Of a stretch of 64,000 bases of DNA, positions 1-38,500 are shown in pieces; positions within the stretch are counted from its first letter, which is position 1; every line of letters starts with the position of its first letter. The DNA is from Leucoraja erinacea (Eukaryota), in assembly GCF_028641065.1 (NCBI RefSeq), contig NC_073394.1, forward strand, positions 16,554,001-16,618,000, written 5' to 3'. A program made the translations under genes and the position numbers. Under the pieces are notes generated by a model that saw only the letters and a list, made by a program, of their open reading frames with translations, was not told the origin of the DNA and did not search any database.

Positions 1-739
1 ATTCCAGGAGAAAGATAAGGTCAATGGCCAGAGGTTAGAGCATATTGTAAAGACCAAACTTCAAACAACACGATATTTAGTGAGATGACATTTCCGCATA
101 TATACATTATGTTGGACAGGCTTGGGTCCAGAGGTCCAACATAAATCTTGCAAGCCAGTGAACAGGAGGTTCATGGAAAAGCATTGAAGGTCACTAGCTG
201 ATGCCATGGCATGTCTAGACCATCCTTGACCTAACAACCATTCCCCAATGGAGCGAAGAACAGAGGAGAGCACAAGGACAGTGCAGTCATCTAATCCTGG
301 AAGAACATTGAAGACTTCACAGCCTTTGATGTGAATGTCCTTCTCTTCATTCTACAGAATGTTATTTATTACAATCTCAATGTTATTGTTAACCCAACCA
401 GAGGTTGACAAGTTGAAAAATAACAAACTCTTTCAAACAGATGAAAGCCCTGCTGTGATAAAGTATCGCCAACCTGAAACATCAGCTCTGTTTCTCTTTC
501 CATGGATGTCTCCTGGTTATTAAGTGTTTCCAGCATTTTCTGTTGTAATATCAAGGTCATAACAAATTCAGTAATTTGGCTGAACTACAAACTATTCTCG
601 GAAGCATACTAAATAAAGATTCGAAAGTCAAGGTATTACTGTACACACCACACAGCAGCATCCCCAAAAGTTAGAATCAATAAAGAGATAATGTTGGAAC
701 ACTGATAAAAAAATTCAAACCATATCTTAAGATGAGTGA

Positions 740-1085
740 TATTCAACAAATTCACCAAATCATTGATTTGGGACCTGAATAGAAGTGGCCCTAGCACCAA
801 CTCCTGCGGAACACTAGTTACTGGCAGCCAAGCAGAAAAAACCCCCTTTATTGCCATTCTTTGCCTTCTGCCACCCAGCCAACCTGTTACCCATCATCTT
901 CCCTCTGATACCATGGGCTCTCATCTTCTTTAGCAGGCTCACATGCAGCACCTTATCAAAGGACTTCTGAAAATCCAAGCAAATAACACCCACTGACTCT
1001 CCTTTGTCTATCCTGCTATTTACCTCCTCAAAAAATTCCAACAAATTCATCCCCTTCACAAAACCATGCTGACTTTGTCCTATGT
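740..1085 (-). mobile_element. CR1 LINE reverse transcriptase fragment
   Basis: [33 protein letters not shown] and WLPVTSVPQELVLGPLLF motifs, with frameshifts. Confidence 0.85.
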
Positions 1086-1104
1086 TATTATGAGCTTCTA
1101 CGTA

Positions 1105-1260
1105 CTCAGGGCAGTCACAGTGGCGCAGCGGTAAAGTTGCTGCCTGATCCCTATTGTGTGTAGGGTAGTGTTTCTGTGCGGGGATCGCTGGTCGGCACGG
1201 ACCTGGTGGGCCAAAGGGCCTGTTTCCGCGCTGTATCTCTAAACAAAACTAAACTAAACC
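1105..1260 (+). mobile_element. tRNA-derived HE1/V-SINE-like element (internally deleted)
   Basis: 5' cacagtggcgcagcggtaaagttgctgcc, 3' gggccaaagggcctgtttccgcgctgtatctct and a (ctaaa)n tail. Confidence 0.75.
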
Positions 1261-1544
1261 TCATCCTTTATAATGGACTCTAAAAGCTTACCAACCACTG
1301 AATTCAGGCTCACTGGCCTATAGTTTCCAGTCTTCAGCTTCACTTCATTCTTGAACAGCAGAGTAATAGTTGCAATTTTCTAATCATCTGGAACCACTCG
1401 TGATTCTTGAAAGATCACAACAAATGCCTCCACAATCGCTGACATCTACTCAATAATGTAACAATTGCCAAGATATATTTTCATTCACAGAAGCAGGACA
1501 ATTCCAACCCAGCTAATTGCCACCCAAATAGTCTATGCTCAATC

Positions 1545-2150
1545 ATCAGTGAGGTGATGGAAGCTATCATCACGAGCATTCTCAAATTCCGCTTATTCAT
1601 GAACAACCTATTAGAAGATGCCCAGTTTGGGTTCTTCCAAGATCACTTGGCTTCAGACCTCATTACAACCTTGGTCCAAACATGGATTAAACAGCTAAAT
1701 TTCAGAGGTGAGATAAGAGTGACTTCCCTTGCTGTCAAGGTAAAGTTTTACAGTGTAGCATGAAGAAGGCTTGGTAAAACTAAAGTCAATGGTCACTAGG
1801 GGTAAAACACTCAAGTGGTTGGAGACATACCTTAATAAAGAAAAATAGTTGTGATTGTAGGCTATCTTAACCCAGGATATCACTGTGGGAGTTCCTACAT
1901 TCAAACATCTTTGTAAGTTTCATCAGTGACTTTGTTTTCAGTATAAGGTCAGAAATGGGGATGTTCCTGATGATTTCACTGGTTACAACAACGCATGTTG
2001 GTAATCCACAACTGCATGCAGCAAGACCTAGATAACATTTAAGCAAAAGTTGTTAAGTGGCAAGTAACATTCATGCCACATAAGGACCAGGCACTGACCA
2101 TCTGCAGCAAGAGAGAATCTAATTACCCATCATTAAAACATAATGGAATT
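1545..2150 (+). mobile_element. Old LINE (CR1/L2-type) RT remnant
   Basis: Degenerate QFGFFQDHLASDLITTLVQTWIKQLNFRGEIRVT motif followed by decayed RT sequence. Confidence 0.65.
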
Positions 2151-2299
2151 ACATTGCCAGATCGCCCAGCATCTGACAAGACAAGAAGAAGGAGGGTCTG
2201 ATGGGATCAGAAGAAGAAAGTCTCGACCCGAAACATCGCCCATTCCTTCTATCAAGAAATGCTGCCTTTGTTACTCCAGAATTTTGTGTCTAACATTAC

Positions 2300-2657
2300 C
2301 ATGAGTCTGGAGTCAAATGTAGGAGGGGAGTCAAATGGGATAGTCAAGGACGGAGTTAAAGGGAAAGAGGGTAAAGGGATCGTTAATGACCCCAGAATTA
2401 ATGGGAAAAGAAGCTCACAAAGGGATAGGAGAGTATGACCAAGTGTAATATGGATCGTTGTGAAAGGTGAGATGCGTAAGGAATTAAAAGTATTGTATAT
2501 GAATGCGCAAAGTATAAGAAGTAAGGTGGATGAGCTTGAGGCTCAGTTAGAGGTTGACATTGTGGGGATTACTGAGACGTGGCTGCAGGAGGACCTGGGC
2601 CTGGGAAGTTAATATTCAGGATTATACATCCTATAGAAAGGACAGGGCAGGTGGGCA

Positions 2658-2688
<31 letters not shown>

Positions 2689-5600
2689 TAGCTCTGCTGG
2701 TGAGGGATGGAATTCAGTCCCTTGCGAGGGAAGACATAGAGACTGACGAGATAGAGTCACTGTGGATTGAGTTGAGGAATTGTAAAGGCAAGAAGACACT
2801 ATTTGGTATTATCTACAGACCCCCAAATAAAACTAGCATGTAACAAAGGTAATGCCACTGTGGTGATGGGGGATTTCAATATGCATGTAGACTGAGAAAA
2901 TCAGGTTCGTTCAGGTCCCCAAGAAAGAGAGTTTGTAGAGTGCCTCCGAGATGGATTCTTAGAGCAGCTTGTAATGGAGCCGACCAGAGAAAAGGCAATT
3001 CTGGATTTAGTGTTGTCCAATGAACCAGATATGATAAGAGAACTCAAGGTAAAGGAACCGAGTTGGCCGATTAGGAAAGGGGGAGATGCAACGAGACCTG
3101 GGTGCCATGGTACACCAGTCATTATAAGTAGGCATGTAGGTGCAGCAGGCAGTGAAGAAGGCGAATGATATGTTAGCATTCATAGCAAAAGGATTTGAGT
3201 ATAAGAGCAGGGAGGTTCTACTGCTGTTGTACAGGGTCTTGGTGAGACCACACCTGGAGTATTGCGTACAGTTTTGGTCTCCTAATCTGAGGAAGGACAT
3301 TCTTGCCATAGAGGGAGTACAGAGAAGGTTCACCTGGGATGTCATGACTTTCATATGAAGAAAGACTGGATAGACTTGGTTTGTACTCGCTATAATTTAG
3401 AAGATTGAGGGGGGATCTTATAGAAACTTACAAAATTCTTAAGGGGTTGGACAGGCTAGATGCAGGAAGATTGTTCCCGATGTTGGGGAAGTCCAGAACA
3501 AGGGGTCACAGTTTAAGGATAAGGGAGAAATCTTTTAGGACCGAGATGAGGAAAACATTTTTCACACAGAGAGTGGTGAATCTCTGGAATTCTCTGCCAC
3601 AGAGGGTAGTTGAGGCCAGTTCATTGGCTATATTTAAGAAGGAGTTGGATGTGGCCCTTGTGGCTATAGGGATCAGGGGGTATGGAGAGAAGGCAGGTAC
3701 GGGATACCGAGTTGGATGATCAGCCATGATCATATCGAATGGCGGTGCAGGCTCGAAGGGCCGAATGGCCTACTCCTGCCCCTATTTTCTATGTTGAACC
3801 GCTGGAGTTAGTGATCATAATATGATTAGTTTTAATCTGCAATTTGAGGTTAAATCGGAAATGTCAGTGATGCAGTTGAACAAAGGGGACTATGAAGGCA
3901 TGAGAGAGGAGCTGGCCAAGGTAGACTGGAAAGGGATCCTAGCAGGAATGACGGTGGAACAGCAATGGCAGTAATTTCTTGGTATAATCCGGACGAGGCA
4001 GGATCATTTCATTCCAAAAAGGAAGAAAAATTCTAAGGGGAGTAGTAGGCAAACGTGGCTGACAAGAGAAGTTAGGGATAGAATAAAACTAAAAGAAAAG
4101 ATGTATAACACAGCAAAGAGTAGCCAGAAGCCAGAGGATTGGGAAACTTTCATAGGACAACAGAAGGAAACAAAATTGGCAATACGGGCTGAAAAGATGA
4201 AGTACGAAGGGAAGCTGGCCAGGAATATAAAGAAGGACAGTAAAAGCTTCTTTAGATATGTTAAGGGAAAAAGAGTAACAAAGTCAAATGTGGGTCCCTT
4301 GAGGGCAGACACAGGTGAAATTATTATGGGCAACAAGGAAATGGCAGAAGAGTTGAACAGATACTTCGGATCTGTCTTCACTAAGGAAGACACAAACAAT
4401 CTCCCAGATGTACTGGAGGACAGAGGATTTAAGGGGGTAGAAGAACTGAAATAAATTTTCATGATGCGAGAAATAGTATTGGGTAGGCTAATGGGACTGA
4501 AGGATGATAAAACCCCTGGGTTCTCAGGGAGGTGGCTCTCGAAATAGTGGACTCATTGGTGATTATTTTCCAATGTTCAATCGATTCAGGATCAGTTTCT
4601 GTGGATTGGAGGATAGCTAATGTTATCCCATTTTTCAAGAAAGGAGCAAGAGAGAAAACGGGGAATTACAGACCAGCTAGCCTGATTTCGGTGGTGGGAA
4701 AGATGCTGGAGTCAATTATTAAAGAGTTAATAATGGGGCATTTGGATAGCATTAAAAGGATTAGTCCAAGTCAACATGGATTTATGAAAGGGAAATCATG
4801 CTTGACTAATCTTCTGGAATATTTTGAGGATGTGACAAGCAAAATGGATGAAGGGGTGCCAGTGGATGTAGTGTATCTAGACTTTCAGAAAGCCTTTGAT
4901 AAGGTACCGCACAGGAGACTGGTGACTAAAATTAGAGCACATGGTATTGGAGGTAGGGACATGGAGAGAAAATTTGTTGGCAAACAGGAAGCTAAGAATA
5001 GGAGTGAATGGGTCCTTTTCAGAATGACAGGCAGTGGCAAGTGGAATGCCGCAAGGCTTGGTGTTGGGGCCGCATATAGTTTACCATATATATTAATGAT
5101 TTGGAAGAAGGAATTAGAAGCAACACTAGCATGTTTGCGGATGACACAAAGCTGGGTGGCAGTGTGAACTGTGAAGAGGATGTTCGGAGGTTGCAGGGTG
5201 ACCAGGACAGGTTGAGTGAGTGGGCAGATACGTGGCAGATGCAGTATAATATAGATAAATGTGAGGTTATCCACTTTGGGGGCAAAAATAAGGGGGCAGA
5301 TTGTTATCTCAATGGGGTTAGGTTAGGCAAGAGGGAGGTGCAGCGAGACCTGGGTGGCCTTGTACACCAGTCACTGAAAGTTGGCGTGCAGGTACAGCAG
5401 GCAGTGAAGAAAGCTAATGGAATGTTGGCCTTCATAACAAGAGGATTTCAGTATAGGAGTAAAGAGGTTCTTCTGCAGTTGTATAGGACTCTGGTGAGAC
5501 CACATTTGGAGTATTGTGTCCAGTTTTGGTCTCCGAATTTGAGGAAGGACTAGTGGAATCAAGGGATATGGAGAGATGGCAGGCACGGGTTATTGATTGG

Positions 5601-5690
5601 AGAAGATCAGCCATGATCACAATGAATGGCGGTGCTGGCTCGAAGGGCCGAATGGCCTCCTCCTACACCTATTTTCTATGTTTCTATGTA
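2300..5690 (+). mobile_element. CR1 LINE (endonuclease to RT to 3' tail), interrupted by a second CR1
   Basis: APE motifs around 2490-3060 (LYMNAQSIRSKVDELE, DIVGITETWLQ). RT in ORFs 4101-4454, 4532-5167 and 5101-5553. (ttctatgt)n tail near 5675-5688. Confidence 0.92.
3061..3795 (+). mobile_element. 5'-truncated CR1 nested in the older CR1, with 6-bp target-site duplication
   Basis: gaaccg at 3055-3060 and 3796-3801 flanks a CR1 3' end (ORFs 3140-3358 and 3405-3719, tail ttttctatgtt). Host sequence resumes at 3796. Confidence 0.85.
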
Positions 5691-6814
5691 GACCAGGTAT
5701 GAGTGAAACATATGAGTTTTTCCAACTTTCTAATCTAATAGTTTCAAGGCTTTCACTATTGAGGTCAATCTTTTTTTAATGCAATTGTCTGAATTGCAGG
5801 ACCAGTAATTTAACTAGCACACTCCCAATCCTAACTGCAGAATTTTGACTCAAAGGAACAAAGAGGGAGAACATACATCCTTCATGTTCCTCCCACTTGT
5901 AGTCAGTGTCAAACAATCTAAACTGTAATGTTCAAAATGAATGCTCGAAGACACTCAAAAAACATTAGTGCAAGCGCTCAGCTTTTGTGCCCATTGGCAT
6001 GGGAGGAGCGTTCTTACAGGATTTATGGACAAATCACTGCCCTACTGGAAGCTTCTCATGTCTCTTGCACCCGCCGCCGTATAGTTGTCTCCTTTCCCAA
6101 ACTGGTGTTGGATCGAACCAATTTCTTGTCGTCAGAGCCAGAAAGCAGCAGGAAGGTGGTTGAACGGCAATTATCTCTCATCGGTGTCAGCTAAATGAGG
6201 CTCTATGCAGGACATGAGATGTAAGCCCTCAGTCAGTTCCAGTAGACTGATGTAAAGACCTCCCACTGGTTTTAAAAATCAAATTTCTATATCACAAAAC
6301 ATCATTTGAATTTCAGTAATAAAATAATGGCGAGTATTACAAATAATAAATTCACAACCAATGTTCAGAAATCTTGTGATCTTTATTTCTTGTTAAAAAG
6401 CAGAAACAAATTTAAGAAAATACATTTTCAATACACAGAGTCCTCACAATGTATTCTATGGCATATGATTATTTAACCACAACATCCTCCCCTACTGCAA
6501 AATTCAACAGGATTATAATCGTGCTTTTGGCTACAGGCTTTATCTCTATTTCTCTCTCCATATATTCTGTTTGAAGAGCTGATTACGTCCAGAATTTTCT
6601 GTATTTTATTAGCTGCTTAACATCTTGATATGACCTTTAAATAAATAGGTGTTGTGATTAAACATAAACCTCATGGAGAATATTGTCTTTAATTATTCTC
6701 ATTGAAACCATTGAATTTGTTTAACTTCAAAGTTTGCTTTGTACAGAGTCAACTGTGTAAAACTGTGGATTGCAATGTAATTGCATCCAAATCCCGTGAC
6801 TGTTATGAGCTTGT

Positions 6815-7020
6815 GTAGGAAGGAACTGCAGATGCTGGTTTAAACCGAAGATAGACACAAAATGTTGGAGTGACACAACGGGCAGGCAGCATCTCTGGAG
6901 AGAAGGAATGGGTGGCTCAGTCTGAAGAAGGGTCTTGACCCAAAACATCACCCATTCCTTCTCTCTTGAGATGTCACCTGTCCTGCTGAGTTACTACAGC
7001 ATTTTGTGTCTATCTACTGT
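6815..7020. mobile_element. Penelope-derived palindromic short element
   Basis: Inverted arms agatagacacaaaatg...tctggagagaaggaatgggtg / cacccattccttctctc...cattttgtgtctatct. Same family recurs at about 2205, 17890, 18120, 20335, 23545, 25960, 42540, 43430, 52130 and 52700. Confidence 0.7.
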
Positions 7021-8814
7021 TGTGAGTTCTGTAATATCAGAAATTAACACTTCAACACAATTCATTAAATTCTACATATGTCTGAATAAAAAATATTATC
7101 CATACATGACTATCCATCACTAACAAAATAACATATTAAATTTAGCTTAAAAATACAAACTATCAGATAACCCCCCAAGTATTCCGCCCATCGCCAAATT
7201 ACCATATTTCAGTTAAAGACAATTTAAATCCTTGCTCTCATGCAATCAAGGACACTTGGTTCTTCCTTAAACATTTTTTTCTATCCATCAATAGCCAGAG
7301 CAATAACATTACTTGTAATTGTATTCGTCCATCTTTTTGTTGCCAATATAGTACAGATGGTAAACAAACACCACACATACAGACTGAAATAGTTGCATTT
7401 AGCCAGTTCCTGTTTTTACTTTGTAGCACCAGATTAAAAAAATGAGTGCACTGGTGTCTACTCTTTGGGATCTTAGATTTCATTTCTGACAGAACTAAGA
7501 AAAATGAACTGGCATTGAAAAAATTAATCTCCACCATGTAAATTGTGCATTTGTGGCTCAATTTAACGGCATTCTGAATAAAAATCAAGTCCGTGCAGCC
7601 TAATCTTATTTTGGTGACATTGCAACCTGGGATTTTTTTTTGTATTTTGATTTGGGAAATAAATTACACCTGCCCAATTTGTTTTAAAGCTTTCTAAATC
7701 ACCCAAGAAACCAGTGGTATATGTTGACAGCAATTTATTTTGTCTGTAGAAAACCATGAATGTACAGCTCAGCTATCAATGGCCAAAAATCATGTGGTGA
7801 CAGGTACTGATCATATCCTTTAAAAAAAAACAGTGCATGTGTGTATTGGCAAAAGTAATGCCACAATGCAACAGCTACATAAAATATGAAATGACAAAAT
7901 TCTAATTTCTATGTCTATAATAAATGTCAGTGACTCTCCGATGAGGTTACTCAAAAATCAAAGCAATATATTTCCATGTAGCATTAGAAATTGACCACAA
8001 AATTACTGCATATAAAATAACTAAGGAATACAAACTTGTTGCTGCCTATTTTGGACTCAGATTCAATGCCATGGAAACAGCACATGTCCATGCAAGAGAC
8101 CTGTGTGTTGGTAGACGCCATTCCTCACAGCTGAGCTGGAATCATTATGAGGTCTTTATCAGTACTCGCTCGAGCTTTCACCTTCACCTCTCCCAATAGA
8201 AGGCATCAATTTGAGCCAAAGCCTTGGCTGCAGGGATCACAAGCTGCATTTCATCTTACATTTTAATTGTTTAAAAAAAAACAATCGTAAAGTTTAAAAT
8301 AAAGCAAATACATTTTTTGTCAGAGAAATCAAGAAATTAGATAAAAATTCAGAAAAGCAAAATATCACAATCGACTGGCACTGCAGATCTTCGTCACTTT
8401 CTTCCCATCAATAACCATGCCATTGTTTATTTTAAAAGGTTTTCATCTGGCATTACGAAAATTAAAAGTACTCCTTCATTTGAAGTCCTCATCTTGCCCA
8501 GTTTTCTTTCATATCAGAACAGAGAATCTAACCAATGTTCCTGCTTTATGTGATTGCCTAACAAGATCCAAACAATACTAAAATGCTCACCAATTTGTGA
8601 TTACTTTCCACTTTGGCTGCAGTTGAGACATGCAGTTATCACTGGCCTTGTTCATCATACAATGACCATATTATTTTAATAACACTACTGGGATTTCTTC
8701 ATCAACACCATCTCTGCTCCCCAGGCTTGGCCACGGCAAACCTCCAGACCATCGGCTGTTCAGCCTCCTGTGGTTAAAATTATTTAGAACCGATTTCAGC
8801 TCCAAGAACTCAAT

Positions 8815-11800
8815 TTAAAAATTATTGGAATCATTTTCATTTATTGAATTATCTTGGCTGATTACTGCATTGTGCACTTCCATGAACCTCTGTAAATATT
8901 TTGAAGTATACAACCAGTGGTGCTTCAGTATATCTTCCAGCTCATAGCTCTTGGACTGCCTTGCATTCATCTTTCTGAAACGGCGAAAGAGTTTGTTGCC
9001 TGATTCATTGCCTTCACTTGCCCATGCACCTATTGAGCCATCTCTTTCAATGATCTCAGGGACATGAGCCAAAGTCTTATGAAGGTAGTTGGTGATCTTC
9101 CCATCATATCTGTACTTGAACTTTGTATTAAGCAGTTCTGCAAATCTCTGGGAATTAAAGCTGTACTGACAAACAAGATCCGGGCATTCTTTGAGTGGGA
9201 ATGTGGATCGCCACACGGGTTTCATGAGAATGTAAAGGTGCATCAATTCCCTGAGAATCTCTCGTCTTTCTTCAGAAGGAATCAGTTCACATACTGCTTC
9301 CACAGTCTCTTCAGTCATTAGTTTCCTTGCAAAGTTTCCATTCAGCCTCATGATAGGTTTCAGGTTTATCTTTTCCCTGAAATGTTTATCAAGCATTGCC
9401 TGCAACCTTTTCCTTTCCTCCTTAGATGGACTAGGATTTTTGTGCAACTCCCCAATCTCATCCTGGAATAGCTTGTAGAATTCAGTTGCATTGCCAATGT
9501 CACAGTGTAGAGCATCTATGGAGGGCTGTGTTTCAATAAATGCTTTTGCTGCAACCCCCTTCACCCTGTCACGTAACTCTTCAGCGGTCTCCTGATATGG
9601 ATTTGTGCGCCAAACTTCATAGCGCTCTAAGTTCTCTTCATGGCTTCGCGTTATGGAATGAAGGGTCAGATTTTGTGAAGCGTTGCTTCGAGTGGCATCA
9701 CAGAGTGTACACACATACATCGAGCCTGATGCTTCAAGGCCTTCCAACTCACGGACCAGCTTTTCATCATAACCCGTGCCTCGAAAGATAAACTTAAAGG
9801 ATCTGGGCAAATCTCCAATTTCAAGGATTAAGTCACTGCTTTTCATTGCTTCTCTTTCGGCGACTAGGGGACCCAGGATTGCCGTCATGGTTTCGTGGTC
9901 AGATTCATCGGCCAGCATCAGGCAAAGTGGCTTGCAGCACAACTCAGAATTTGGCTTTAGCTCCTCAAAGACGTTCACTTTCTCACCATTTTCATTCTCC
10001 ACGCTTATAGTCATGATTGTGAAGGAATACCTCACTGCCTTCTCCGGAACTGGAGGACCACATCCATGTTTTTCACTAACATCGCCCATTCCATCGCAAG
10101 ATTCTTTGATTACCACTGTAAATGGTCCACCAAAATACTCATCGATATTTTGGCATTTCAAACCTTCCAAAATATTATCCTCAAGATCTTTCAGTGTTGA
10201 TACAAGTGCCACATCGTACCTAAATCGTCTTGAAATTGTTTCCATTGGATATTCGTCAACACAGTGTGACCAACCACAAGTACCATCTATTATCCCTACT
10301 TCAGTGTTGGTAGAGACTTGTGGTAGAGGAGGTTCCCATTCAAATGAATAATAACCCGGCAACAAGGTTTTCTCTGCACTTCGGAGTGCATGCAGCGGTT
10401 GGAAGATTTGCTTCCCGGTTGTTGCTTTGACGGTTTTATACATTTTATGATACTGACTGCAACTTAGAAAGGTGCTAACCCTAATGGCAAGACAGACTGC
10501 TGGCTTCAGCCCTGATCCATGTCCTTGCATCAGAGCCTCCAGTTCATCTGCTTGCCTGTGCTCGTTACCAGCTCTCAATGCCAGCACGAACAGAGTAAGG
10601 CACACTGACTTCACATCACCACCTTCCTCCTTGTCCGCAAATGCCTTCACCTGAAGTTTGAGATATCGCAGCCGATGTTTTTGAGCCCGGCGAGTTAGAG
10701 AGAGTAAGTGTTGCCTCGGCCGGCCACCCTTGTTTGTTGGTGAGTAGGCGTGCAGCATTCTTTTCTCTTTGTGATACTTGGCATGGTTGGGATATTCGCC
10801 AAGTCTCACCTCCTCTCCACAATCTGCCACTGGACATTTTAAAACCAATGAATTGAGAACACTTACAAATGATTTTACTGGGCTTCTACACTCTGTGGGA
10901 TCGCAAGGAAACCTGCAAACGGGACAATATTTTCCGAGCACTGCAGTGCATTTGAGAATGCATGTTCTGCAGAAAAGATGCTTGCATGGTGATTGCACTG
11001 GGTCAGCCAGTAAATGTTCACAGACCTGGCACGACACTGACTGAATAAAGTTATTGGGATAATCGAGCATAAGGAGTTTTGTATTTAGGTGGATCTTCTT
11101 GCAGTTAACAATCTTCTTGGCCAATAGAATACTTGTCGAATTTCTTTGATCTGTTCTTTTAGTAATTCTTGATATATCGACTGCCGTTTTGGGCTTCTTT
11201 GCGGCTGGTGGACTTCGTTTGAGAACTTTCCGTTTGCGAGTCCCATTTCGAAAGTTGCAAACATTGCAGAAATTGGAGTGTGGCTTCCACTGAACAATTG
11301 TGCTGATGGGAAAAAATGCATCTTCGTTAGTTGTGTTGTTGATTGTCTGAATAACAATCCGCCAGCAATTGTAGCAAAAGTGGGTGGGATGTCTGGCCTC
11401 TGAGTCCAGCCGCACATCAATATTAAATGTGTTGTGGATGAGCTCAGGCCAAAAACTATGTCCATATCCCATTTTCCTAAGAACCTCTTGTGTGACATCA
11501 TCAACAGGGCCATTGACTGGGTATTTCATGTCATAGCTGTTGGTATTAAAGGAAACTCCACAAATGCGGCAGAGATTTTGTAATCTTAACATGTGATCTT
11601 CCAAAGATTTTGTTTCCATTTGCCTTTCATAGCACTTGGCCTTTGGTGGGATGACCTCTAAAGGCATGTGTTTCAGAGACTTATCTTCCAAAGTCTTCTT
11701 GTCCAAGGGCAATGTCTCCAAACATGTAGATCCCGGTGGCTTGATTTGAGGGGGTGACATTTGCCATATTAGACCATGAACTGGCTGAACAGTTTGTGGC

Positions 11801-11913
11801 TCAAAAACCTTTGGCGCTGAAATCTTGGCTTTCTTTTGGACGTTTATTGTTGGCCTGGTTTCTGAATTCCTGAAATATTCAGGTATTATTTGCAGCGGCA
11901 TCTCCATTTCCAT
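8815..11913 (-). CDS. RAG1: V(D)J recombination-activating protein 1, 1032 aa, single coding exon
   Basis: Uninterrupted ORF with LCRICG and [10 protein letters not shown] zinc motifs, C3HC4 RING (CQVCEH...CKHLFCRTC...CPVC), C2H2 finger and nonamer-binding [21 protein letters not shown]. Catalytic D607 (KESCDG), D716 (GTGYDE) and E970 (EGNESG) match mouse D600/D708/E962. Splice acceptor (ctctattag|) lies 13 nt upstream of the ATG, so the exon starts at 11926. Confidence 0.99.
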
Positions 11914-12532: not shown

Positions 12533-13690
12533 AACCATATAACCATATAACAATTACAGCACGAAAACAGGCCATCTCGGCCCTACAAGTCCGTGCCGAA
12601 CAACTTTTTTCCCTTAGACCCACCTGCCTGCACTCATACCATAACCCTCCATTCCCTTCTCATCCATATGCCTATCCAATTTATTTTTAAATGATACCAA
12701 CGAACCTGCCGCCACCACTTCCACTGGAAGCTCACTCCACACCGCTACCACTCTCTGAGTAAAGAAGTTCCCCCTCATGTTACCCCTAAACTTCTGTCCC
12801 TTAATTCTGAAGTCATGTCCTCTTGTTTGAATCTTCCCTATTCTCAAAGGGAAAAGCTTGTCCACATCAACTTTGTCTATCCCTCTCATCATTTTAAAGA
12901 CCTCTATCAAGTCCCCCCTTAACCTTCTGCGCTCCAGAGAATAAAGACCTAACTTATTCAACCTATCTCTGTAACTTAGTTGTTGAAACCCAGGCAACAT
13001 TCTAGTAAATCTCCTCTGTACTCTCTCTATTTTGTTGACATCCTTCCTATAATTGGGCGACCAAAATTGTACACCATACTCCAGATTTGGTCTCACCAAT
13101 GCCTTGTACAATTTTAACATTACATCCCAGCTTCTATACTCAATGCTCTGATTTATAAAGGCTAGCATACCAAAAGCTTTCTTTACCACCCTATCTATAT
13201 GAGATTCCACCTTCAAGGAACTATGCACGGTTATTCCCAGATCCCTCTATTCAACGGTATTCTTCAATTCCCTACCATTTACCATGTACGTCCTATTTTG
13301 ATTTGTCCTGCCAAGGTGTAGCACCTCACATTTATCAGCATTAAACTCCATCTGCCATCTTTCAGCCCATTTTTCCAAATGGCCTAAATCACTCTGTAGA
13401 CTTTGGAAATCCTCTTCATTATCCACAACACCCCCTATCTTGGTATCATCTGCATACTTACTAATCCAATTTACCACCCCTTCATCCAGATCATTGATGT
13501 ACATGACAAACAACAAAGGACCCAATACAGATCCCTGAGGCACCCCACTAGTCACCTGCCTCCAACCTGACAAACAGCTATCCACCATTACCCTCTGGCT
13601 TCTCCCATTCAGCCATTGTTGAATCCATCTTGCTATTCCTGCATTTATACTCAACAGTTTAACCTTCTTAACCAACCTTCCATGACTGGG
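12533..13690 (-). mobile_element. 5'-truncated CR1 LINE in RAG1 intron 1, (ATATGGTT)n tail
   Basis: ORFs 13247-13675 and 12614-13228 are in one frame separated by a single TAG stop. GVPQGSVLGP and YADDTK motifs; tail aaccatataaccatat on the plus strand. Confidence 0.95.
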
Positions 13691-20419: not shown

Positions 20420-20912
20420 ACATGGTTGGAGGGAGGGGGACTGGGGGTGGGGAGGTGTGGGGGAAGGGGGGGTGTGGAGGAGGGTGTGTGGGGGAGGGGG
20501 GGTTGTGGGAGAGGAGGGGTGGGGGATTGTGTGTGGGAGGGGGGTGTGTAGGAGGGGGGGGTGTGGGGGAGGGGGAGGTGTGGGGGAGGGGAGGTGGTGT
20601 GGGAGAGGGGGGTGTGTGGGGGATGGGGTGTGGGGAAGGGTGGTGTGGAGGAGGGGGGTGTGTGGAGGGGAGGGTGTGTGGGGGAGGGGTGGTGTGGGGG
20701 AGGGGTGTGTGTGGGGGAGTTGGTGGGGTAGGGCGGGTGTGCGGGAGGGTGGGTGTGGGTAGGGGGTTTTTGGGAGGGGGTGTGTGGGGGAGGGGGCGGT
20801 GTGTGGGGGAGGGGAGGTATGTGGGGGAGCGGTGTGGGGGAGGGGTGGTGTGGGGGAAAGGGTGGTGTGGGGGGGGGGGGGTGGAGTGGGGTGGTGTGGG
20901 TGTGTGTGGGAG
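20420..20912 (+). repeat. G/GT-rich low-complexity array (GGGGGAGGGGGGTGTGT-like units)
   Basis: About 490 bp almost free of C, with dozens of runs of 3-10 G. Confidence 0.95.
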
Positions 20913-21324
20913 GGATTCCACTCAGTTGCACCACACAGCACCTCCCGGCTCCACTCAACGGGTTCCCTGACTCCACACAGCATCTTCCCTGACTCCACAC
21001 TTGTGGACTCAATCAGTACGGCTTGCGGACTCAGCCCCGCCTCCGGGATTTATTCTCCTCGCCCCGGAGATTGACAGCGGGTGCCGGAAGGGGCGTTACC
21101 TTCGTGGTGACTGACAGGCGAGAAGACCAATCTGCTGATCTCACGATTTTTTAAGCCTTCATAATATTTGTAATATTTCACCGATCGGAACAAAACTTGG
21201 TGCGCTTGGAGCAAAGGAGAACGGTGAGTACAGTGGCAAAAAAATCCTAGCGTTATAAGGCACCGTATTTGTGCAAATTTTTAAAAAAGGCAAACCGAAA
21301 GAGGACAAGATGAGAGTTTTAGTA

Positions 21325-22981: not shown

Positions 22982-23034
22982 TAATAGTATAGATAGGTGG
23001 AGTCAATAATGGGGGGGGGGGGGGGGGGGGGGGG

Positions 23035-24596: not shown

Positions 24597-25925
24597 TTAT
24601 CTCCAGCCATATGCATTCCTTCCAAACTTGTACATTAACCTTCTATGCACCCGTTCCAAATTTCCAGTTTTGTAATAATGCCTGAAAAGCTAAATAAAAT
24701 GAAGTGATCTGTCAACAATTATTTCCCTCTGTAAAATGTGACAATCAGGTATTATTGGCAATAATAAACTACCAGTATTTAGGATTGGTCCATGAGTGAT
24801 TCTATAATTGCAAAGGATTTGCAGCATGCTATCTCTTAACACATATAAACCGGATTTCCATAACCTTTCTTGCACTTACTTTTATTTATGCTCTGGAACT
24901 TGCACCTTCCCAATAGAACAAACCTTTAGCCTCTGCCCATCACTAACTCATAGAGTCATTGAGTCTTACAGTGTGGAAACAGGCCCTTTAGCCTAACTAA
25001 CCCACACTGGCCAACATGTTCCATCTACACTAGTCCCACCTGCCTGCATTTGGCTCATGTCCTCTTAAACTTCTCCTATCCATTAACCTGTTTAAATGTT
25101 TCTTAAACGTCCCAATAGTACCTGCCTCATTGACCTCCTCCGGCAGCTCGTTCCATACACCCACCTTTCTTTGTGTGAAAATGTTACTCATCGGGTTCCT
25201 ATTAAATCTTCCTCCTGTCATCTTAAACCTATGTCCTCTGGTTTGCCCTTGTCCATTGATGGAAGAGACCCAGATTGGGGTCATCCAGACTAGTAACTGC
25301 AGTGCATTTTGTAGACATCTCATACTGCAGCCACAGTAGTGTAGAGATTTAATGGTAAGGGTGGCACAGGCCCTTCGGCCCACCGATACTGCACCGACCA
25401 GCGATCCCCGTACACTAGTGCTATCCTACACACTGGAGACATTTTAGAATTTTACCGAAGCCAATTAACCTACAATCCTGTACATCTTTGGAATGTGTTA
25501 GGAAACTGCAGCACCTGGAGAAAACGCATGAGGACACAGGGAGAACATTTAGTTTTTTCTGGGATATGTTTCTTGCAATGTAAACTGAACAGTGCCTTGC
25601 AAAATCCTTCCCTATTATAACTAGATTGTACATAATTAAAAGTGCCTAATTGTGAAATAAAAATAATTCCAATTTACCAAATCACATTTCTGTTTGGAAG
25701 TTCAGCCTGATACATAGATTGCTAAAGTACCTCAATGCTCTGCTTAGTTTCTCATAGGTCATGTGCTCATTCTTTTTCCTTTGTCCCCAGAGCTTAGCCA
25801 GAGAATCGGACTTCACAACTTTGAATATTCCTTCTTCTATGTCTTCCCATTCCAAAATGGCGCTGTTTTTCTTCGGAGAGTGGAAAGATCGCGAATAAAT
25901 TCCCAAAGGTACTCTCTTTGCAAAC
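24597..25925 (-). pseudogene. ELF5: ELF5-like ETS-domain exons (3' part only; 1-nt frameshift, either pseudogene or assembly error)
   Basis: Exon 25731-25925 encodes [13 protein letters not shown], then after a frame change [51 protein letters not shown]. Last exon 24597-24681 encodes [27 protein letters not shown]. Canonical AG/GT sites. Closer to recalled ELF5 (WGQRKKN, KTGILERVDRRL) than to EHF. No PNT exon found. Confidence 0.75.
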
Positions 25926-26699
25926 CTTCAGGAGAAAGCGAAAATCCCACTTACTCCTATATCTGAAGAAGGGTCTCAACCCAAAACGTAATTCCTTCTC
26001 TCCAGAGATGCTGCCTGACCTGCTGAGTTACTCCAGTATTTTGTGTCTACCTTATATATCTTATGTTCTGCATGTTACAAAAAAAAGAAATCTTCCCACT
26101 CCAGTTACCTCCCACACTACAAAGACGTAAGGGTTTGGAAGTTAATTGGCTTTGGTAAAATTGTAAATTATCTTTAGTATGTGTAGAATAGTGCTAGTGT
26201 CCGGGGATCGCTGGTCAGCACGGACTCAGTGGCCGAAGGGCCTGTTTCCGTGCTGTATCTCTAAACTAAACTAAACTAAAAACTCAATTTTAGATAACAT
26301 GCATCACATTTCAATGCTTGATTGTGCTGTGCTCTGAAGAATAATTGCCCAAATAATACCAACTGAGAGCCACCGCCTACAGCACCACCCCTGGAGCCCC
26401 CTCCTCCAAACACAGTGTACTGGGCTCCATCAGCATGATCTAGGCAGCAGCATGGCCTCCAGTGCTGCACTTAGGGAACCATATTAATGTATTGCCATAT
26501 ATGGCAATATATGTGCGGCCATATTAACGTATTCCCATGCACATCATTGTGAAACGGGGGAAACTAGAGCATCCAGGTGAAACCCACAAGCTGAACATGC
26601 AAAGTCCTCACAGACAGCAGCAGAGTCGGGACTGAACTTGAGCTGGATCTGTGAAGCAGAAGCTCTACTAGCTACCTCCCTAAGAATTTGAAACTGAGC

Positions 26700-26830
26700 A
26701 TCAGCTTGGCACACCACATGGACATTTCCTGTGAAGAAGTGACCCAGCCTGCATTCAACATCTCCAGTGTCGAGGAGGCCACATTGTGTGCATCTGGGAA
26801 CAGTTTGTATTCCTGATCCGCAAGAAGGAA
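26700..26830 (-). mobile_element. Penelope GIY-YIG endonuclease remnant
   Basis: Minus strand reads approximately C-x-RCTQCGLL-x-TG...CRLGHFF, resembling the PLE motif CIRCSQCGLLYIGETKRRLGDRF. Confidence 0.55.
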
Positions 26831-26842
26831 TTGTAAATAGTT

Positions 26843-29895: not shown

Positions 29896-32800
29896 CTAAA
29901 TGTGTTCAGATGGACGCGATTGGGAGGAGGAATATTCCCACAAAGTCTATTAAATGGCTCATCAATAACTTGTTTGGTTTCTCACTGATTTCTACTGACT
30001 GTTACTGTAATTTAACAATGGTTTACTGGTTTCTGCAGGGACTAGTACCCAAAGTTTGACTTCAAGCCATCTGGAATAACCAGTTCCTCCAAAGCATGAT
30101 GCATTTGAGGGGATCCATGTGGTACTTGGCATGGCCGAGAGAATGAGTAGTTGCATGCAGGGCAGGGCTGGCAGCTACAAGAGGCAGGAGGAGGGAGAAC
30201 AAAACTCAGCAGCAGGCCAGTGCTTCAAGAGAAGAACTTGCCAATGTGAATCATAGTGAGGAACAGTGGATCAGACATCTCTGCTTAGTAAAGCTCAGAA
30301 AACAATGGAGGTCATATGCACACACATATGCCCTCCTCACTGCACCCCGTTACCATTCCTAATCATATTGACCTAAGGGGCCAGGTATATTTCATATCAT
30401 TCTTGGTCGATTAAGCTGGCAGAACTAAATTAACTTCAGGTAGGTGCTTTTTCCAAACTTAATTTTAATTGACATTAATGTTTTTTATTTAATTAGCATA
30501 TCTCAAAGGTGATTTTTAAGTGATTTTATAAAAATTGTTAATTATGTTTCAGATGCTTTCAAGAAGTATGAGTCACCAGAAAAAATCAAGAAATCCGTGA
30601 GCAAGGCCTTTCTGCTGCGTGCAGTTTGGTTGTCACTCGGATCCACTTTACGTCAAAGAATAATGGCTAGCCAGATTTAGGAGCCATGCAACTGCAAAAG
30701 TCATCCCACCAGAGGCAAACAATGAGCAAGGTTGGGGTCAACCATGATCTGGAGGAGGCTGAGATTGAGTAGGGATATCTTCACTAAAATTTGTCAAATC
30801 CAATTTCGGAAAAGGTAAATAGGGTGAAAGGTTACCGTGGATAGGAGGCAGAAATGGAGAGCTGAGGTTCTAGTGAGATCAGTCCTGGTGGAGTAGGCAC
30901 TAGAGGCCAAGTATACATTCCTGCTCCTGATTCTAGTTCACATGTAATTGCTCATCAACCTCTGGACAGGGCAAGAGCTGATTTGTCACCATGGCCACAT
31001 CACTGTGTCTCTGTATGTCTCAATCTCCTCCAGGCTTGAGCTAGTGATATTTTTAACCTATCAAAGTTTGCCTTCCACTATTGCAAAGACAGAACACTTT
31101 CTGTTCCAGAAAGCTGAATACATCTTCTTGCATATATTACAGGGCAGATATCCAAAGGCAAAACCAATCACAAAATGCATTTGGTCCTATTGTATACATG
31201 TACACAGCACATGCAAAGCACCTTTAACATTGGTGCCTTAACATCAGAGAGCACTTAATTGTTGACCAAGTGACCAACAGGACAACGGAGGCCTCTTCAA
31301 TTATAAGAGAAAGGAGCACTCCTAGCCTCTCCAGTGCTGGGAGTCTGCCACTGAAAATAATCATCAAATTGTCAGTTACCATTCAATCAATTACCTCAGC
31401 ACGTTCTGGCTGAGGCCATCTTTCTTTGTGGCCCAGCCCTGAATTATCCAAAGCTTTGCCCACATCTTCATATCTGAATTCGCAATACATGGTCCATTGG
31501 AGGTTGTGGTGCTGTTTTAATATCCATCCAGCCTCTCCCATCTTGGTTATTCTTCAAAATCTACTACTAGTTCCTTGAATTATCATTGAGAACCCTTTCA
31601 TTAGGGCAAGCGATACTGGCTGTAAATACATACTAATTCAGGGCAACTGCATTGAAAGCTAAAGATTTCATGTTCATAAGTTCTAAGAGCAGAATTAGGC
31701 CATTCGGCCCATCAAGTCGACTTCGCTTTTCAATCATGGATGATCTATCTTTCACTCTCAACCCCATTCTCATGCCTTCTCCCATAACCCCTGACACGAT
31801 ATGATACGATAGAACTTTATTTATCCCAGGAGGGAAATTGATCTGTCACAGTCATAAAAACACAAAATACATGAAACAAACACAAAATACATGAAACACT
31901 GTTGGCTGGCTGCTGTGTGCACAGTGCCTGAACCGGAAACAGTAAGTTTTTTTTTTTTTTTAATGGCCCCTTACTAATTTTTACAATCTTACTAATCAAG
32001 AATTTGTCAATCTCTGCCTTAAAAATATCCATTGACTTGGCCTCCACAGCCGTCTGTCAGAGACATTTATGACACAGACGTACAGAACTACAATCTCATG
32101 ATGCCTAGCAAGGTCCCCTGTGCAGCAACATATTACTGTACCACTAAGGAACCTCTCAGCCACTTTGTCCTTTGCTCACATTGTTTCCAGGAAGTGCACA
32201 AGAGCCAAGAGCGCAGCAATTATTACCCATCCCTAATCACCGTTTGTGAAAGTGATGGTCAGATGCAATTTTGAACCACTGTCTTCTTTGTTGGGAAGGT
32301 ACTCCCCCAATCCTGTTGGTGGACAGTGATAATGATGGAACTATGATGTCTTTCCAATTCAGGATGGTGGGAAGAATCGGTCTGATTTCATTTTGTACAA
32401 TTAATTTCATCAGAGCAAAGTGATCAATCATCTTTATGTTGGGCAATTTTGGTGAGTAATGATCTTGTTTAGCGACTAAGTATAGCTGCTCAGGTTCTAA
32501 GTAACTAGGAAGATATAATCATGTCACCAATCCATTATACAGTTTATTATTACACCCATGCAATTGAAATAAATACCTGTGTGGAACAATTCCTTGTTTT
32601 TCCAACTCCTCTTGAGAGAGTGGTAGACTAACCTGTTGAACGTGTTTTCCATATACAAAGTCAGATAGATGATTGTAATGATGCCAACATCTGACCTAAT
32701 CGACGCTGTTCAAAGTATGCCAGCAGAAACAATTGTTAGCAATAGCATATACCCACTGCCTAAATATTACTATCTGATTTCAGTTATTAATATTAAAGCA

Positions 32801-32980
32801 AAAGAGTAGCTATGTTATTATTTTTGATGTTCTTGAATCAAAGAAACTTCAAATAAATAACACTAATATAGGTCGTATTCTAGATAGTGAAAATGTTTAT
32901 CAATAATTACAGCAGTGTCTTGACTGCAAAATCTGTCCCCAGACAACCTGGTGATCGATCAAGATACACCCAGAACGCTA

Positions 32981-33325
32981 ATGCCCCTGTCCCACTTAGG
33001 AAACCTGAACAAAAACCTCTGGAGACTTTGCGCCCCACCCAAGGTCCGTGCGGTTCCCGGAGGTTCCCGAAGGTTTTTGTCAGTCTCCCTACCTGCTTCC
33101 ACTACCTGCAACCTCTGGCAACCACCTGCAACCTCCGGGAACCGCACGGAAACCATGGGGTGGGGTGCAAAGTCTCCAGAGGTTTCTGTTCAGGTTTCCT
33201 GTTAGAACCCTTTTTAAACAATGGAACAACATGCGCAGTACGCCAATCCTCGGGGACTATTCCCGTTTCTAATGACATTTGAAAAATTTCTGTCATAGCC
33301 CCGGCTATTTCTACACTAACTTTTC
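32981..33325. mobile_element. Palindromic Harbinger-type MITE lacking its right terminus, joined to a CR1 fragment
   Basis: Left end taa-tgcccctgtcccactt; arms aggaaacctgaac...ttcccggaggtt / aacctccgggaa...gttcaggtttcct. Then about 33202-33325 is a minus-strand CR1 piece ([26 protein letters not shown]) closely matching 47600-47720. Confidence 0.75.
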
Positions 33326-33879
33326 TTCAGTAACTGTAACATCAAGCCCTCTGTATTACAGGAATCTCCAAAAGCAGGTCTGGTGAAGCCTCTTGCTTTT
33401 CCAAACGTCCTGTAGACATCCTAACGTTAGCATGTGACCTGTTTTTTTCCCCCCACTGAACCAGCTTTCAGAGTTCAATGAAGATCACACTGCTTTTACT
33501 TCAGAAGGTAAATTGGTTCATGTGCCAAACTGGAAAAAACGTAGACGATAAAGTGGAAGAAACTTAGAAGATAAAGCAGTTGAATCTGAGATTCAACTTC
33601 GAAGATAAAGTGGAAGAAGCCGCAATTAAACACTATCTACTAATAGTCACCAAGAAACAAGCAAATTGAGAACAGGAGAAAAAAGTTAGTTTAATTCTTT
33701 GTGGTAACCCTTCTAGGTTATGAGGAAAGTTTAAGCAAATGACACAAATTTTCAGCTGGTAATTTTCTGCTTGAGTGATATTTAAGAGGAATGTACATAT
33801 ATAGAGTATGGAAAAATGTACTGTGGAGTAGTACTTTAAAATAAACAGCGAGAGTAAGACATTCATATTTTCTCATGTT

Positions 33880-35060
33880 TACTCCCACTGCAGAAAGAGG
33901 ATATTTAGCTCATTGAGCCAGGGCAATTCTCAGAGCAATCCTATTTACTTTCCTAGAACCTATTCCAAAATCAGGCCCTTAGGCCAACAACCACATGTCA
34001 ACCATCAAGTACCGAGCTATATTGACTCCATTTACCAGCAATTGGCGATTCAAGTTTTACCGAACGCCTTCTTGACCACCCTATCTACCTGTGACGCAAC
34101 TTTCAAGAAACTATGTACCTGCATTCTTAGATCCCTCTGTTGTACAACTCTCCAGAGCCTTTTCATTCCCAGTGAAGGTCTTGCCCTGGTTTGACTTCCC
34201 AAATGCAACACCTCACAGTTATCTGCGCTAAAGTCCATCAACCATTTCCCCGCCTACTTGCCCAGCTGGTCAAGATCCTGCTGTAGCATTTGATAACCCT
34301 TTTTGCTGTCTACAATGCCACCCATTTCAGTGTCATCTGTAAACTTACTAATCATGCCTTCCACATTGTTGATATAAACCACACACAGCAATGGGCCCAG
34401 TGGGGATCCCTAGAGGAGCTCCAATAATCACAGGCCTCCAATCCGAAAAATAACCTTCCACCGTCTCCTTCTGCATCTTTCCATGAAGTCAATTCTCTAT
34501 CCAGACAGCTTGCTCTCCCAGGAGCCCATAAGATCCAACCTTCCAGAGTAGCCTACCATGCGGAACTGTATTAAATGCCTTGCTGAAGTCCATGTAGACA
34601 ATGTTTTGCCCTCATCAACTTTTTTGGTTACTTCTCCAAAAAGCTAGTGAGATTTTGAAGACATGATCTCTCATGTGCTAGCCCATGCTGACTATTCCTT
34701 ATTAGCCCATCTATCCAAATGCATATATACCTTATCCCTCAGAGTACTCTCCAGTATTTGCCTACCACAAGTGTTAGGCTCACTGGTCTGTAATTCTCTT
34801 TCTTTTCCTTTCAGCCCTTCTCAAATAGAGGCACAACATTAACCACCCTCCAATATTTCATGCATGTCTAATGATGATTTATATATCTCAGCCAGGGCAG
34901 TTTCTCAGAAACCTGCAATTTCTTCTAGCCTCCCAGTGTCCTCAGATATATCTAATCAGGCCCAGGAGATTTATCTACCTTCATACTCCTCAGGATGTCC
35001 AGCACCTCCTAAACCTCCTCAGGCCATCTCCATTAATTGACCCAGTTCCCCAGTCTCCAT
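33880..35060 (-). mobile_element. Decayed CR1 LINE
   Basis: Multiple degenerate RT motifs, e.g. FSADNCEVLHLG and VASQVDRVVKKAF. Confidence 0.75.
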
Positions 35061-35574
35061 GTCTTTCTCCACGGTAAAAGCTGAGGAGAAATACATCTCT
35101 CCCTCCATATCCTCTTACATACCCATAAATCTCCTCACCACCAAGTCTCCTGCCCCATTCTTCGCTGAAGCTGGGCAATTTCAAAATTCCAGTTTATTTA
35201 AAATTCATTGGTTTTGAAAGACTTGATAAAGGCCACATTTAGATTTGACTCAGTCGATCACTAAACTATAAAATCCAGTACCCAAGCAATATGAACTGTA
35301 AAAACAAAGGAACTGGTAGTTTTTATGGGCCAAATCAAACAGCCTTATCATTATCTCACTATTATTCAGATGTCCAAATTAAAAGTGCAAATTTCACAGC
35401 ACGGAGTTATTAAGAGTTGAAATACAATTAAAGTTACAGCAAAGCAACCTTATACAAGTAATTTATTTACATAAATATCACACAGACCATTTGGTGTTAC
35501 AGTACAACAGCTACTTGGGTCCACGTGAGAAGTGATATTACGCAGAGCCTTCCCTAAGATGCAGCTGTCTCTAG

Positions 35575-38500
35575 TCACTTTGTCTCGGGCTTTTTCTCTC
35601 CAGCGTCAAGTTTTGGTAATTCAACCGGCTCACGATGTGCTGGGAAAGTTTCCCACGGGCTATTGAGGTCAAATTTGCGGAATTCCTGAGATAGTTCAAC
35701 TGGCTCAGCAACCACACGTTTGACTTCATCATCATAACGTACCTGGAAGAAAAGATAACAAGTAACATGGGTGACATACTTCATGAGATCGAACAATTAA
35801 CATTGATGTTTAATTATTTCTAAATAGCGGATGTGCTTGCATTGCAGATTTTTAGAACCTAGAACGTACTGCACAGAAATGGGCCCTTAGGCCCAAAATG
35901 TTTGGGCCGAACTTAGTGCCAAATTAAACAGATCTCATCTGCTTGTACATGATCCATATTCCTCTATTCCTTGCACTTGCATATCTAAAAGCCTCTTAAA
36001 AGCCTCAAATCTCCTCCACCACCACCTCAGGCAATGCCTTCCAGGCCCCCCAACACCGTATACAAAACTTGACATGTATATCTCCATTAAACTTTCCCCC
36101 TCTCACCTTACAACTATGAGCTCCAGTGTTGGACATTTTTACCCTGGGTAAAATGCTCTGACTGTCTATCAAGTCTCCCCTCAACCTCAGACCTTCCAAA
36201 GAAAACAATCCAAGTTTATCCAACTTCTCCTTGTACCTGAAAGCCTCTAAACAAGGCAGCATTTTGGTAAACCTCCTCTGCACCCTCTTCAAAATCTCCA
36301 CATCCTTCCTGTCACTTAGCGACAGAACTACAGGCAATACTCCAAATACTGCACGCAATACTCAAAACTTTTTTCAGAAATTTCAGGAGCAGGGTGAATG
36401 GTAGAGAAAAGCAAAAGTCAATTAAAAAAAATTGATAGCTACACTATTGTAGAAACCAGATGTTATACCTCCACATAGCCAGACAGTGGAAAGTCTTTGC
36501 GGAAAGGATGGCCTTCAAATCCATAGTCTGTAAGAATTCGTCTCAGGTCTGGATGGTTAGCAAAGAATACACCATACATATCCCAAATCTGGAATGAATA
36601 GTAGACATTTCTAATTTAATTATAAACTTTAAATTGTAGACTTAATAGATTCAATATATTTATGAAAGACATCAGAAATTTGTGCATCCAACCTACAAAA
36701 TCTAAAATTATCTACTGGATAAAATGTTTTAAATTATAAAACCATACATAATAAATAAATTACTTAAATGTCACTTCTGAATTAGATCATTTATTGTATC
36801 TTGACTTAATCTAATGTCCTATTTTCCGTGCTTGCATCCCAAAGCGCAGTAGAGTTGTTTTAAATCGTATTATTAATTGTGTGGCTGCTTTTGGAAAATA
36901 AGCATCTTACAACAGTTAAGTCCAATTCAACCCTAAAAGCCTCATGATTTTTCACTTGGAATTCAAATTTTAACAAATCAATGAAGTAAAAGTCACCCAG
37001 TTTATCAAATCTGCTCTTTCCAGATAAATTAAGAGCCATCAAAGGCTGGATGCCCCCAAAACTGATGCCATTCCTCAAATTAAAAATTCAAATCTGTACT
37101 ACTGACATCCACAAGCAACTTTCCTCCACCAAATTAGATAGCCATCCTGAATTTGTACACACAACCTTCAATTGGTATTTGTTACAACGTACAAAGTAGT
37201 TCAGCAAGTTCTATAAAAAAATAAATCATTTAAATAACATCTCTCATCAGAACAGGTAAGAAGTCCCATTGAGACTGGAGTCTACCTTTGGTTTTTAGAC
37301 ATTTAACGATAAAGCAATGATTTGTAGTTTTCTTCATACTGATCTCCAATCCTGCCTACAACTAGCTACCTAAAGCCTTGTTTTCATATTCAATTAAATG
37401 AATAATCTACCCTCATTAATAATTAATAGGCTGTCAGAATGTTGTTGAACCTCTTCTTTGCCGGTCTATCAGATTCTGTCAGCAAGCTCTAGCCTCCGAT
37501 ATCTACTATTGCTCTGCTCTGCTCTTAGTTCAATTATCTACCACTCCTTAAGGTTACATCCCTCCAAGCATTGCACTTTGTCTTGCCTTTCCAGGAGGCA
37601 AACTATTAATAAAACAGGAGAATCCAGGTCTTCTTCTTGCGTATGTCGTGCACAGCCTAAAGTTGACGGACAACTTGTTCTATTTGATCTTATTTGATTA
37701 TGCACGTCAGGTTGATTGCATTCGTTGAAACAGGGCGGACCACGTGAAGGTTGCAACCTCCCACCTCAAGAATTCAGGTCAGCTTATATTCATTGTGAGA
37801 GCAACAAAATCAATCTCAGATCAATGCCCTTTGCCTGAGCTGGAAAAAAATCATTGTATTGCTTCAGCTCACCTCTCTTTCATACCAGTTTGCAGCTTGA
37901 AACACAGGTACTAAGGAATCCAACGGCGTCAACTCATCGGTGTAAGTTTTCACACGTATGCGAGAATTAAACCGCAGCGAAAGCATGTTATATACAATCT
38001 ATTGCAAAAGAAGCAGTTATCTTAAAATTCAATCATGACTATCATTAATCAGAACACTGAAACAAGATACAAGATACACCGAAACAAATGAAAGTCTTGC
38101 ACAAATTGTTAATTTTTGTAAAACTCTGAAATACATCATTGCATATTCTTTATATTTATGCATGCATGGAATTAAACAAGTGATTTGGCAATTTGGATTT
38201 TCCTATCATGGCTTTTGTTTATGATTAACTCTATACTTTTTTAAGCATCAAAAGGAAGTGATGTGTGGAAAAGTGTTCAAACAAAATACGCAAATTTTCT
38301 TTGAGCTTTATTTTCTGATAGGTGATTGCAGTGATATTTGCATGTATGAAGTCTATGCCATCATTCAAGAAATAAAGACGTTGAAGTCCATTCTCAGTGT
38401 AATTGACAATATCCAATTGGCAATGGTGTCTCATTGATAAAGATGCTGTTGTAAGGTTCATTTGAGACTATGCACTCACATGCCGCTCACATGTATTTTT

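Follow-up and report, generated by a model that had tools for sequence, protein, structure and literature searches.

Evidence that the little skate RAG1 gene belongs to a canonical RAG1/RAG2 locus with an ELF5-like relic and NDUFS3 on its 5' side

In the little skate, Leucoraja erinacea, RAG1 lies in a 64-kb stretch of DNA (henceforth the window) that corresponds to CM054024.1:16554001-16618000, plus strand, of assembly GCA_028641065.1. A first-pass annotation of the window had reported an intact RAG1 in unusual company and without RAG2, and had proposed either a clade-specific or ancestral arrangement of the RAG locus or a second, RAG2-less RAG1 paralogue. From the observed identities, positions and orientation of the genes and their sharing across species, we conclude with high confidence that the window carries the one V(D)J recombinase locus that the little skate possesses, canonical in layout, RAG2 falling just outside the cut. 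The elements that carry this conclusion are listed below; locus L006 denotes CM054024.1:16529943-16558749, at which the longer of the two RAG2 isoforms of L. erinacea is recorded.

8815-11913, minus strand: RAG1 coding sequence, a single uninterrupted coding exon of 1032 residues plus stop, the longest open reading frame (ORF) in the window.
1-8814, no strand assigned: right-hand 8.8 kb of the RAG2-RAG1 spacer, with long interspersed nuclear element (LINE)/reverse-transcriptase fragments and without RAG2 sequence.
L006:17248-18807 (window -6810 to -5251), plus strand: RAG2 ORF of 519 residues, left of the window, ending 5,251 bases before base 1.
L006:1-10301, minus strand: IFTAP/NWC gene (PF17722), overlapping the 5' part of the RAG2 model (L006:10001-18807, plus strand).

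A Pfam scan of the RAG1 translation returned the RAG1 core at residues 390-1016 (E=0, 1231 bits), together with matches to RAG1_imp_bd (7.8e-60), zf-RAG1 (1.2e-09) and the C3HC4 RING profile zf-C3HC4 (4.4e-07). Among solved structures, the protein aligns end to end with the 1040-residue RAG1 chain 9jpu_A (1492 bits). Residues D600, D708 and E962, the catalytic carboxylates in mouse RAG1 numbering, are conserved relative to this chain, which shares the surrounding motifs SCDGMGD, TGYDEK and GNESGN without a difference. Judged by these matches, the window RAG1 is real and intact, with all catalytic and zinc-binding modules in place, and its importin-binding, RING and zf-RAG1 regions combined with the core mark it as a bona fide vertebrate RAG1. 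The recombinase core is homologous to that of invertebrate RAG1L/ProtoRAG (PDB 6b40; match 1e-78), but the window protein scores 268 bits against RAG1L as opposed to 1490 bits against mouse RAG1, and it has N-terminal importin-binding and RING regions. This degree of conservation suggests that little skate RAG1 would act as an active recombinase.

When gar, coelacanth and bichir RAG2 were used as tblastn queries, no RAG2 match was obtained in the 64-kb window, in an extra 1,186 bases to its left, or within the 10 kb flanking RAG1 in each of little skate, thorny skate and whale shark. The ORFs in 1-8814 are short and resemble LINE debris, with an RVT_1 match at 4532-5167. Chondrichthyan RAG2 was retrieved with a coelacanth query; in a test on RAG1, sarcopterygian queries ranked chondrichthyans above teleosts. 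Among the matches listed for this query were RAG2 proteins from Amblyraja, Callorhinchus, Heptranchias, Mobula, Scyliorhinus, Narcine, Mustelus and Chiloscyllium. In a representative search with gar RAG2, all full-length RAG2 proteins fell in one 50% cluster, the fragment clusters being teleost, bird or unnamed. The cluster of Amblyraja RAG2 includes two L. erinacea isoforms, XP_055505353.1 (586 residues) and XP_055505354.1 (519 residues), encoded on the same chromosome as RAG1.

The last 4,749 bases of the locus recorded for the longer isoform (L006:24059-28807) are base-for-base identical to window positions 1-4749, which places RAG2 on the same contiguous sequence. Transcription of RAG1 runs towards RAG2, and the two genes are convergent (tail-to-tail), with 14,065 bp between their stop codons. 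Additionally, IFTAP/NWC is found on the strand opposite to RAG2 and overlaps it. PMC4157847 and PMC3035778 describe NWC as a conserved third gene at the mammalian RAG locus, overlapping RAG2. Two features of the canonical locus, a linked and convergent RAG2 and IFTAP/NWC overlapping it on the opposite strand, are present in the little skate. The first-pass annotation was correct in describing RAG1 as intact and positions 1-8814 as devoid of any RAG2-like ORF or remnant. Its caveat that RAG2 might lie just outside the window was equally well founded, as leftward extension of the contig, which it had proposed as a check, led to the convergent RAG2.

The exact RAG1 protein of the window is recorded at one place only, on CM054024.1 of GCA_028641065.1. 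Likewise, the 90% RAG1 cluster has one L. erinacea member, which is identical to the window protein and located on one contig. Among the best 120 of 228 protein matches, identity to the window protein amounts to 98% for Amblyraja, 84-85% for rays, 80-82% for sharks and 59-73% for bony vertebrates. A maximum-likelihood tree of 22 RAG1 sequences, the kind of tree that the first-pass annotation had recommended, groups the window protein with Amblyraja (support 99/99) within Rajidae (100/100) and chondrichthyans (100/100). The order of branching, Rajidae, batoids, sharks and then Callorhinchus, reproduces the species tree, and the terminal branch of the window protein measures 0.008. The window RAG1 is an orthologue with its RAG2 partner present, and not an extra copy.

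Two gene models at these loci are worth recording. The 586-residue RefSeq model of little skate RAG2 adds upstream coding exons, one of them at L006:12731-12883, to the single-exon ORF of 519 residues. The equivalent of that exon of the putative N-terminal extension in Amblyraja radiata (L005:5344-5496) shows 90% conservation of its protein sequence. The RAG1 model of the elephant fish, Callorhinchus milii (L007:16296-20237), comprises 1098 residues, of which 42 at the N-terminus come from an additional exon upstream; its length fits only one single-intron solution, with a GC-AG intron of 645 nt.

The spacing of RAG1 and RAG2 was compared across species.

Thorny skate (Amblyraja radiata): gap of 16,403 bp, with RAG2 at 17668944-17670503 (plus strand) and RAG1 at 17686907-17690005 (minus strand) on CM021385.1.
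Little skate (this locus): gap of 14,065 bp.
Gar: gap of 7,866 bp.
Elephant fish (C. milii): gap of 4,732 bp, genes convergent.
Whale shark, horn shark and red stingray: RAG1 is the sole gene called in a stretch reaching 10 kb to either side, according to the gene tables.

For the sandbar shark, Carcharhinus plumbeus, PMC1513397, citing Schluter & Marchalonis 2003, gives a gap of 9.4 kb with seven CR1-like elements. Both the linkage of the two genes and a spacer packed with CR1-like LINEs and short interspersed nuclear elements recall the little skate, whose spacer contains reverse-transcriptase debris, although the shark spacer is shorter than the 14.1 kb of the little skate and the 16.4 kb of the thorny skate. 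The spacing in the little skate is not unusual and fits a large, repeat-rich genome. The locus is the conserved trio of RAG1, RAG2 and NWC known from jawed vertebrates, widened by LINE insertions of the sort that a large elasmobranch genome would lead one to expect. The mammalian locus offers the same picture, with RAG1 and RAG2 convergent, each essentially one large coding exon, the DDE triad, and NWC/IFTAP on the opposite strand over the 5' part of RAG2 (for NWC, PMC4157847 and PMC3035778). A close likeness is also seen to thorny skate CM021385.1, where both RAG1 and RAG2 are 98% identical to their little skate counterparts, the orientation is the same and an ELF5-like exon is likewise found upstream of RAG1. 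The two skates differ in transposon content, for example in a 1.15-kb repeat that the thorny skate lacks, and in the distance between the ELF5-like exon and RAG1 (10 kb compared with 12.7 kb in the little skate).

The sole departure from bony vertebrates is the 5' flank of RAG1. The human order at 11p12 is TRAF6, followed by RAG1 and the convergent RAG2, the latter with NWC (IFTAP). In the skate, RAG1 is preceded instead by a degenerate ELF5-like ETS gene and a block of NDUFS3, KBTBD4 and PTPMT1, represented in the window by the following exons.

24597-24680, minus strand: ELF5-like ETS C-terminal exon, the last coding exon, ending in a stop.
25685-25927, minus strand: ELF5-like Ets-domain exon (Pfam Ets 9.1e-18, profile positions 13-64 of 81 only).
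35578-35796, minus strand: last exon of NDUFS3, 86% identical to the last exon of whale-shark NDUFS3, found by motif and ORF scan, with the stop just below 35578.
36466-36615, minus strand: NDUFS3 exon (Complex1_30kDa 2.3e-17).
50362-51018, plus strand: KBTBD4-type BTB/BACK exon (Pfam BTB 4.7e-28, BACK 6.6e-09).
55112-56017, plus strand: KBTBD4-type Kelch exon (Pfam Kelch_6 1.9e-14).
62936-63235, minus strand: PTPMT1-type dual-specificity phosphatase exon (Pfam DSPc 7.9e-14) with the catalytic motif HCKAGRSRS.

An ETS gene, truncated or degenerate, thus stands between NDUFS3 and RAG1, 12.7 kb from the latter, and the two ELF5-like exons are its final pair of coding exons. The exons of the ETS domain alone were seen, and the first ETS helix looks degenerate, the usual LWEF motif being unrecognisable. 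The 3' end of NDUFS3, comprising its last two coding exons (35575-36615), is located on the same strand as RAG1, with its stop 23.7 kb upstream of the RAG1 ATG, while the KBTBD4-type gene is arranged head-to-head with NDUFS3. A Pfam scan of the long ORFs and recognised exons, out of about 240 ORFs, detected no TRAF/MATH family match in the 52 kb upstream of RAG1. These results uphold the earlier identification of the neighbours as ELF5-like exons, NDUFS3, KBTBD4 and PTPMT1, both by Pfam and by motif matches; the earlier statement that TRAF6 is missing upstream also stands for the window, as far as long ORFs show. An ATG-started ORF of 182 residues at 48182-48730 (plus strand), without Pfam match, lies in a moderately GC-rich stretch between NDUFS3 and the BTB exon of KBTBD4; KBTBD4 may begin its coding sequence with this exon, or the ORF may be located at a bidirectional promoter.

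The same neighbourhood was encountered in other elasmobranchs. In the whale shark, the last exon of NDUFS3 (L003:1-175), an ETS relic (4585-4686) and RAG1 (from 10001) follow each other on one strand. The relic is 56% identical over 34 residues, but a stop codon breaks its frame ahead of the conserved motif MTYEKLSRA, as in a pseudogene. The thorny skate carries the same ELF5-like C-terminal exon (L002:1-282) 10 kb upstream of RAG1, where a gene of 131 residues has been called, and blastn alignment indicates that A. radiata is collinear with window positions 2318-24878 apart from transposon insertions and deletions. Since the order NDUFS3, ELF5-like gene, RAG1 is present in the whale shark and the ELF5-like exon in the thorny skate, this order predates the split between sharks and batoids. 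This 5' neighbourhood is therefore shared across elasmobranchs and is not peculiar to the copy in the window. The part of the earlier proposal that saw an arrangement typical of the clade is thereby supported for the 5' side, which skates and whale shark have in common.

Human NDUFS3, KBTBD4 and PTPMT1 are located at 11p11.2, ordered and oriented relative to one another as they are in the skate (NDUFS3 minus, KBTBD4 plus, PTPMT1 minus). The simplest reading of the 5' flank is that macrosynteny has been conserved while the local order differs. The elasmobranch order is old and is most readily accounted for by an intrachromosomal rearrangement in a linkage group matching human 11p; the 5' flank of RAG1 has probably been rearranged in this way.

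Within this reading, a further question is whether the order NDUFS3, ELF5-like gene, RAG1 could be the ancestral jawed-vertebrate setting of the domesticated RAG transposon, adjacency to TRAF6 being derived in bony vertebrates. The age of the order, older than the split of sharks and batoids, and the position of all neighbours on one human chromosome arm are consistent with this idea. On the other hand, among chimaeras the comparison reaches no further than 1.3 kb upstream of RAG1, where the C. milii locus (L007) stops; in gar, the 10 kb upstream of RAG1 hold no called gene; and a derived state is equally parsimonious because elasmobranchs stand alone on one side. We consider an ancestral setting unlikely on balance. 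Slightly more doubtful still is the fuller version, in which the whole order, including RAG2 and IFTAP, would be the ancestral gnathostome setting with TRAF6 adjacency derived, and the degenerate ELF5-like gene, retained since before sharks and batoids diverged, would perhaps have been kept for hosting regulatory sequence of RAG1.

Could the neighbourhood instead be an assembly artefact, with the RAG locus fused chimerically to a block that has nothing to do with it? This was considered since the order departs from that of bony vertebrates, and has no direct support. There are no N gaps in L006 and no N bases in the window. Moreover, two chromosomes that were assembled independently agree with the window: in the whale shark, NDUFS3, the ETS relic and RAG1 keep their order and common strand over 10 kb, and A. 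radiata shows the collinearity described above, transposon insertions and deletions aside. An artefact of this kind is very improbable.

Least probable of all, to the point of being negligible, is the earlier suggestion of a second, RAG2-less RAG1 paralogue moved next to NDUFS3: it draws on the absence of RAG2 within the window and on the unusual 5' neighbours, and is refuted by the convergent RAG2 just left of the window, 14,065 bp downstream of RAG1 on the same contiguous sequence and with IFTAP beside it, as well as being at odds with the single recorded place of the protein, its 98% identity to the single annotated Amblyraja RAG1, its short branch and species-tree placement, and the same layout of the A. 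radiata locus.

Several points weigh against the interpretation of the window as the canonical, single recombinase locus with an elasmobranch 5' flank. The scan for TRAF matches, which gave none, covered the long ORFs and recognised exons of the window. The comparison of the upstream side of RAG1 is one of elasmobranchs, given the early end of the C. milii extract, 1.3 kb upstream of the gene. The linkage argument draws on the human map, in which RAG1 and RAG2 at 11p12 and ELF5 and EHF at 11p13 share one chromosome arm with NDUFS3, KBTBD4 and PTPMT1. Copy number rests on the exact look-up, the 90% cluster and the best 120 of 228 matches, and a divergent RAG1-like fossil may exist elsewhere. 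Finally, reads on the RAG1 coding sequence are almost nil in one polyA RNA run from a related skate, of unrecorded tissue, of which about 6% was read. Parts of the RAG1 coding sequence and its 3' flank are covered by small contigs from a run that is possibly RNA, and taken together these reads speak neither for nor against activity of the gene.

Had a cartilaginous fish possessed a second RAG1 without RAG2, this would have had a bearing of note on RAG transposon history; at the locus in the window it does not exist, and the understanding of V(D)J recombination is unchanged by the present findings. RAG1, RAG2 and IFTAP of the little skate are already annotated in RefSeq and public records. The small novelty that remains is that elasmobranchs have a decayed ELF5-like gene and then NDUFS3, not TRAF6, upstream of RAG1; no paper on synteny of RAG1 and NDUFS3 was retrieved from the literature collection searched, and a paper on amphioxus has nothing on the synteny of shark RAG genes. 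This order may be useful for reconstructing the ancestral RAG neighbourhood or for seeking conserved RAG1 regulatory elements.

Two repeats complete the description of the window. The first is located directly upstream of RAG1.

12536-13682, no strand assigned: high-copy interspersed repeat of about 1.15 kb, some 620 bp upstream of the RAG1 ATG.

Its summed contig depth reaches 10^5-10^6 in DNA runs, and in the polyA RNA reads of the related skate heavy coverage is confined to the repeat at 12.4-13.8 kb. An ORF of 204 residues inside it (12614-13228) gave no Pfam match. The repeat is absent from A. radiata, where the blastn alignment of L002 jumps from 13683 to 12535, and from the related skate, in which a contig joins 12531 to 13683; it is therefore a recent, lineage-specific insertion beside the 5' region of RAG1. 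The second is a G-rich minisatellite at 20442-20914, with a period of about 16, about 28 copies and the consensus TGGGGGAGGGGGGGTG, within a GC-rich stretch at 20-22 kb. It accounts for the overlapping long ORFs in several frames in that stretch and is potentially G-quadruplex-forming.

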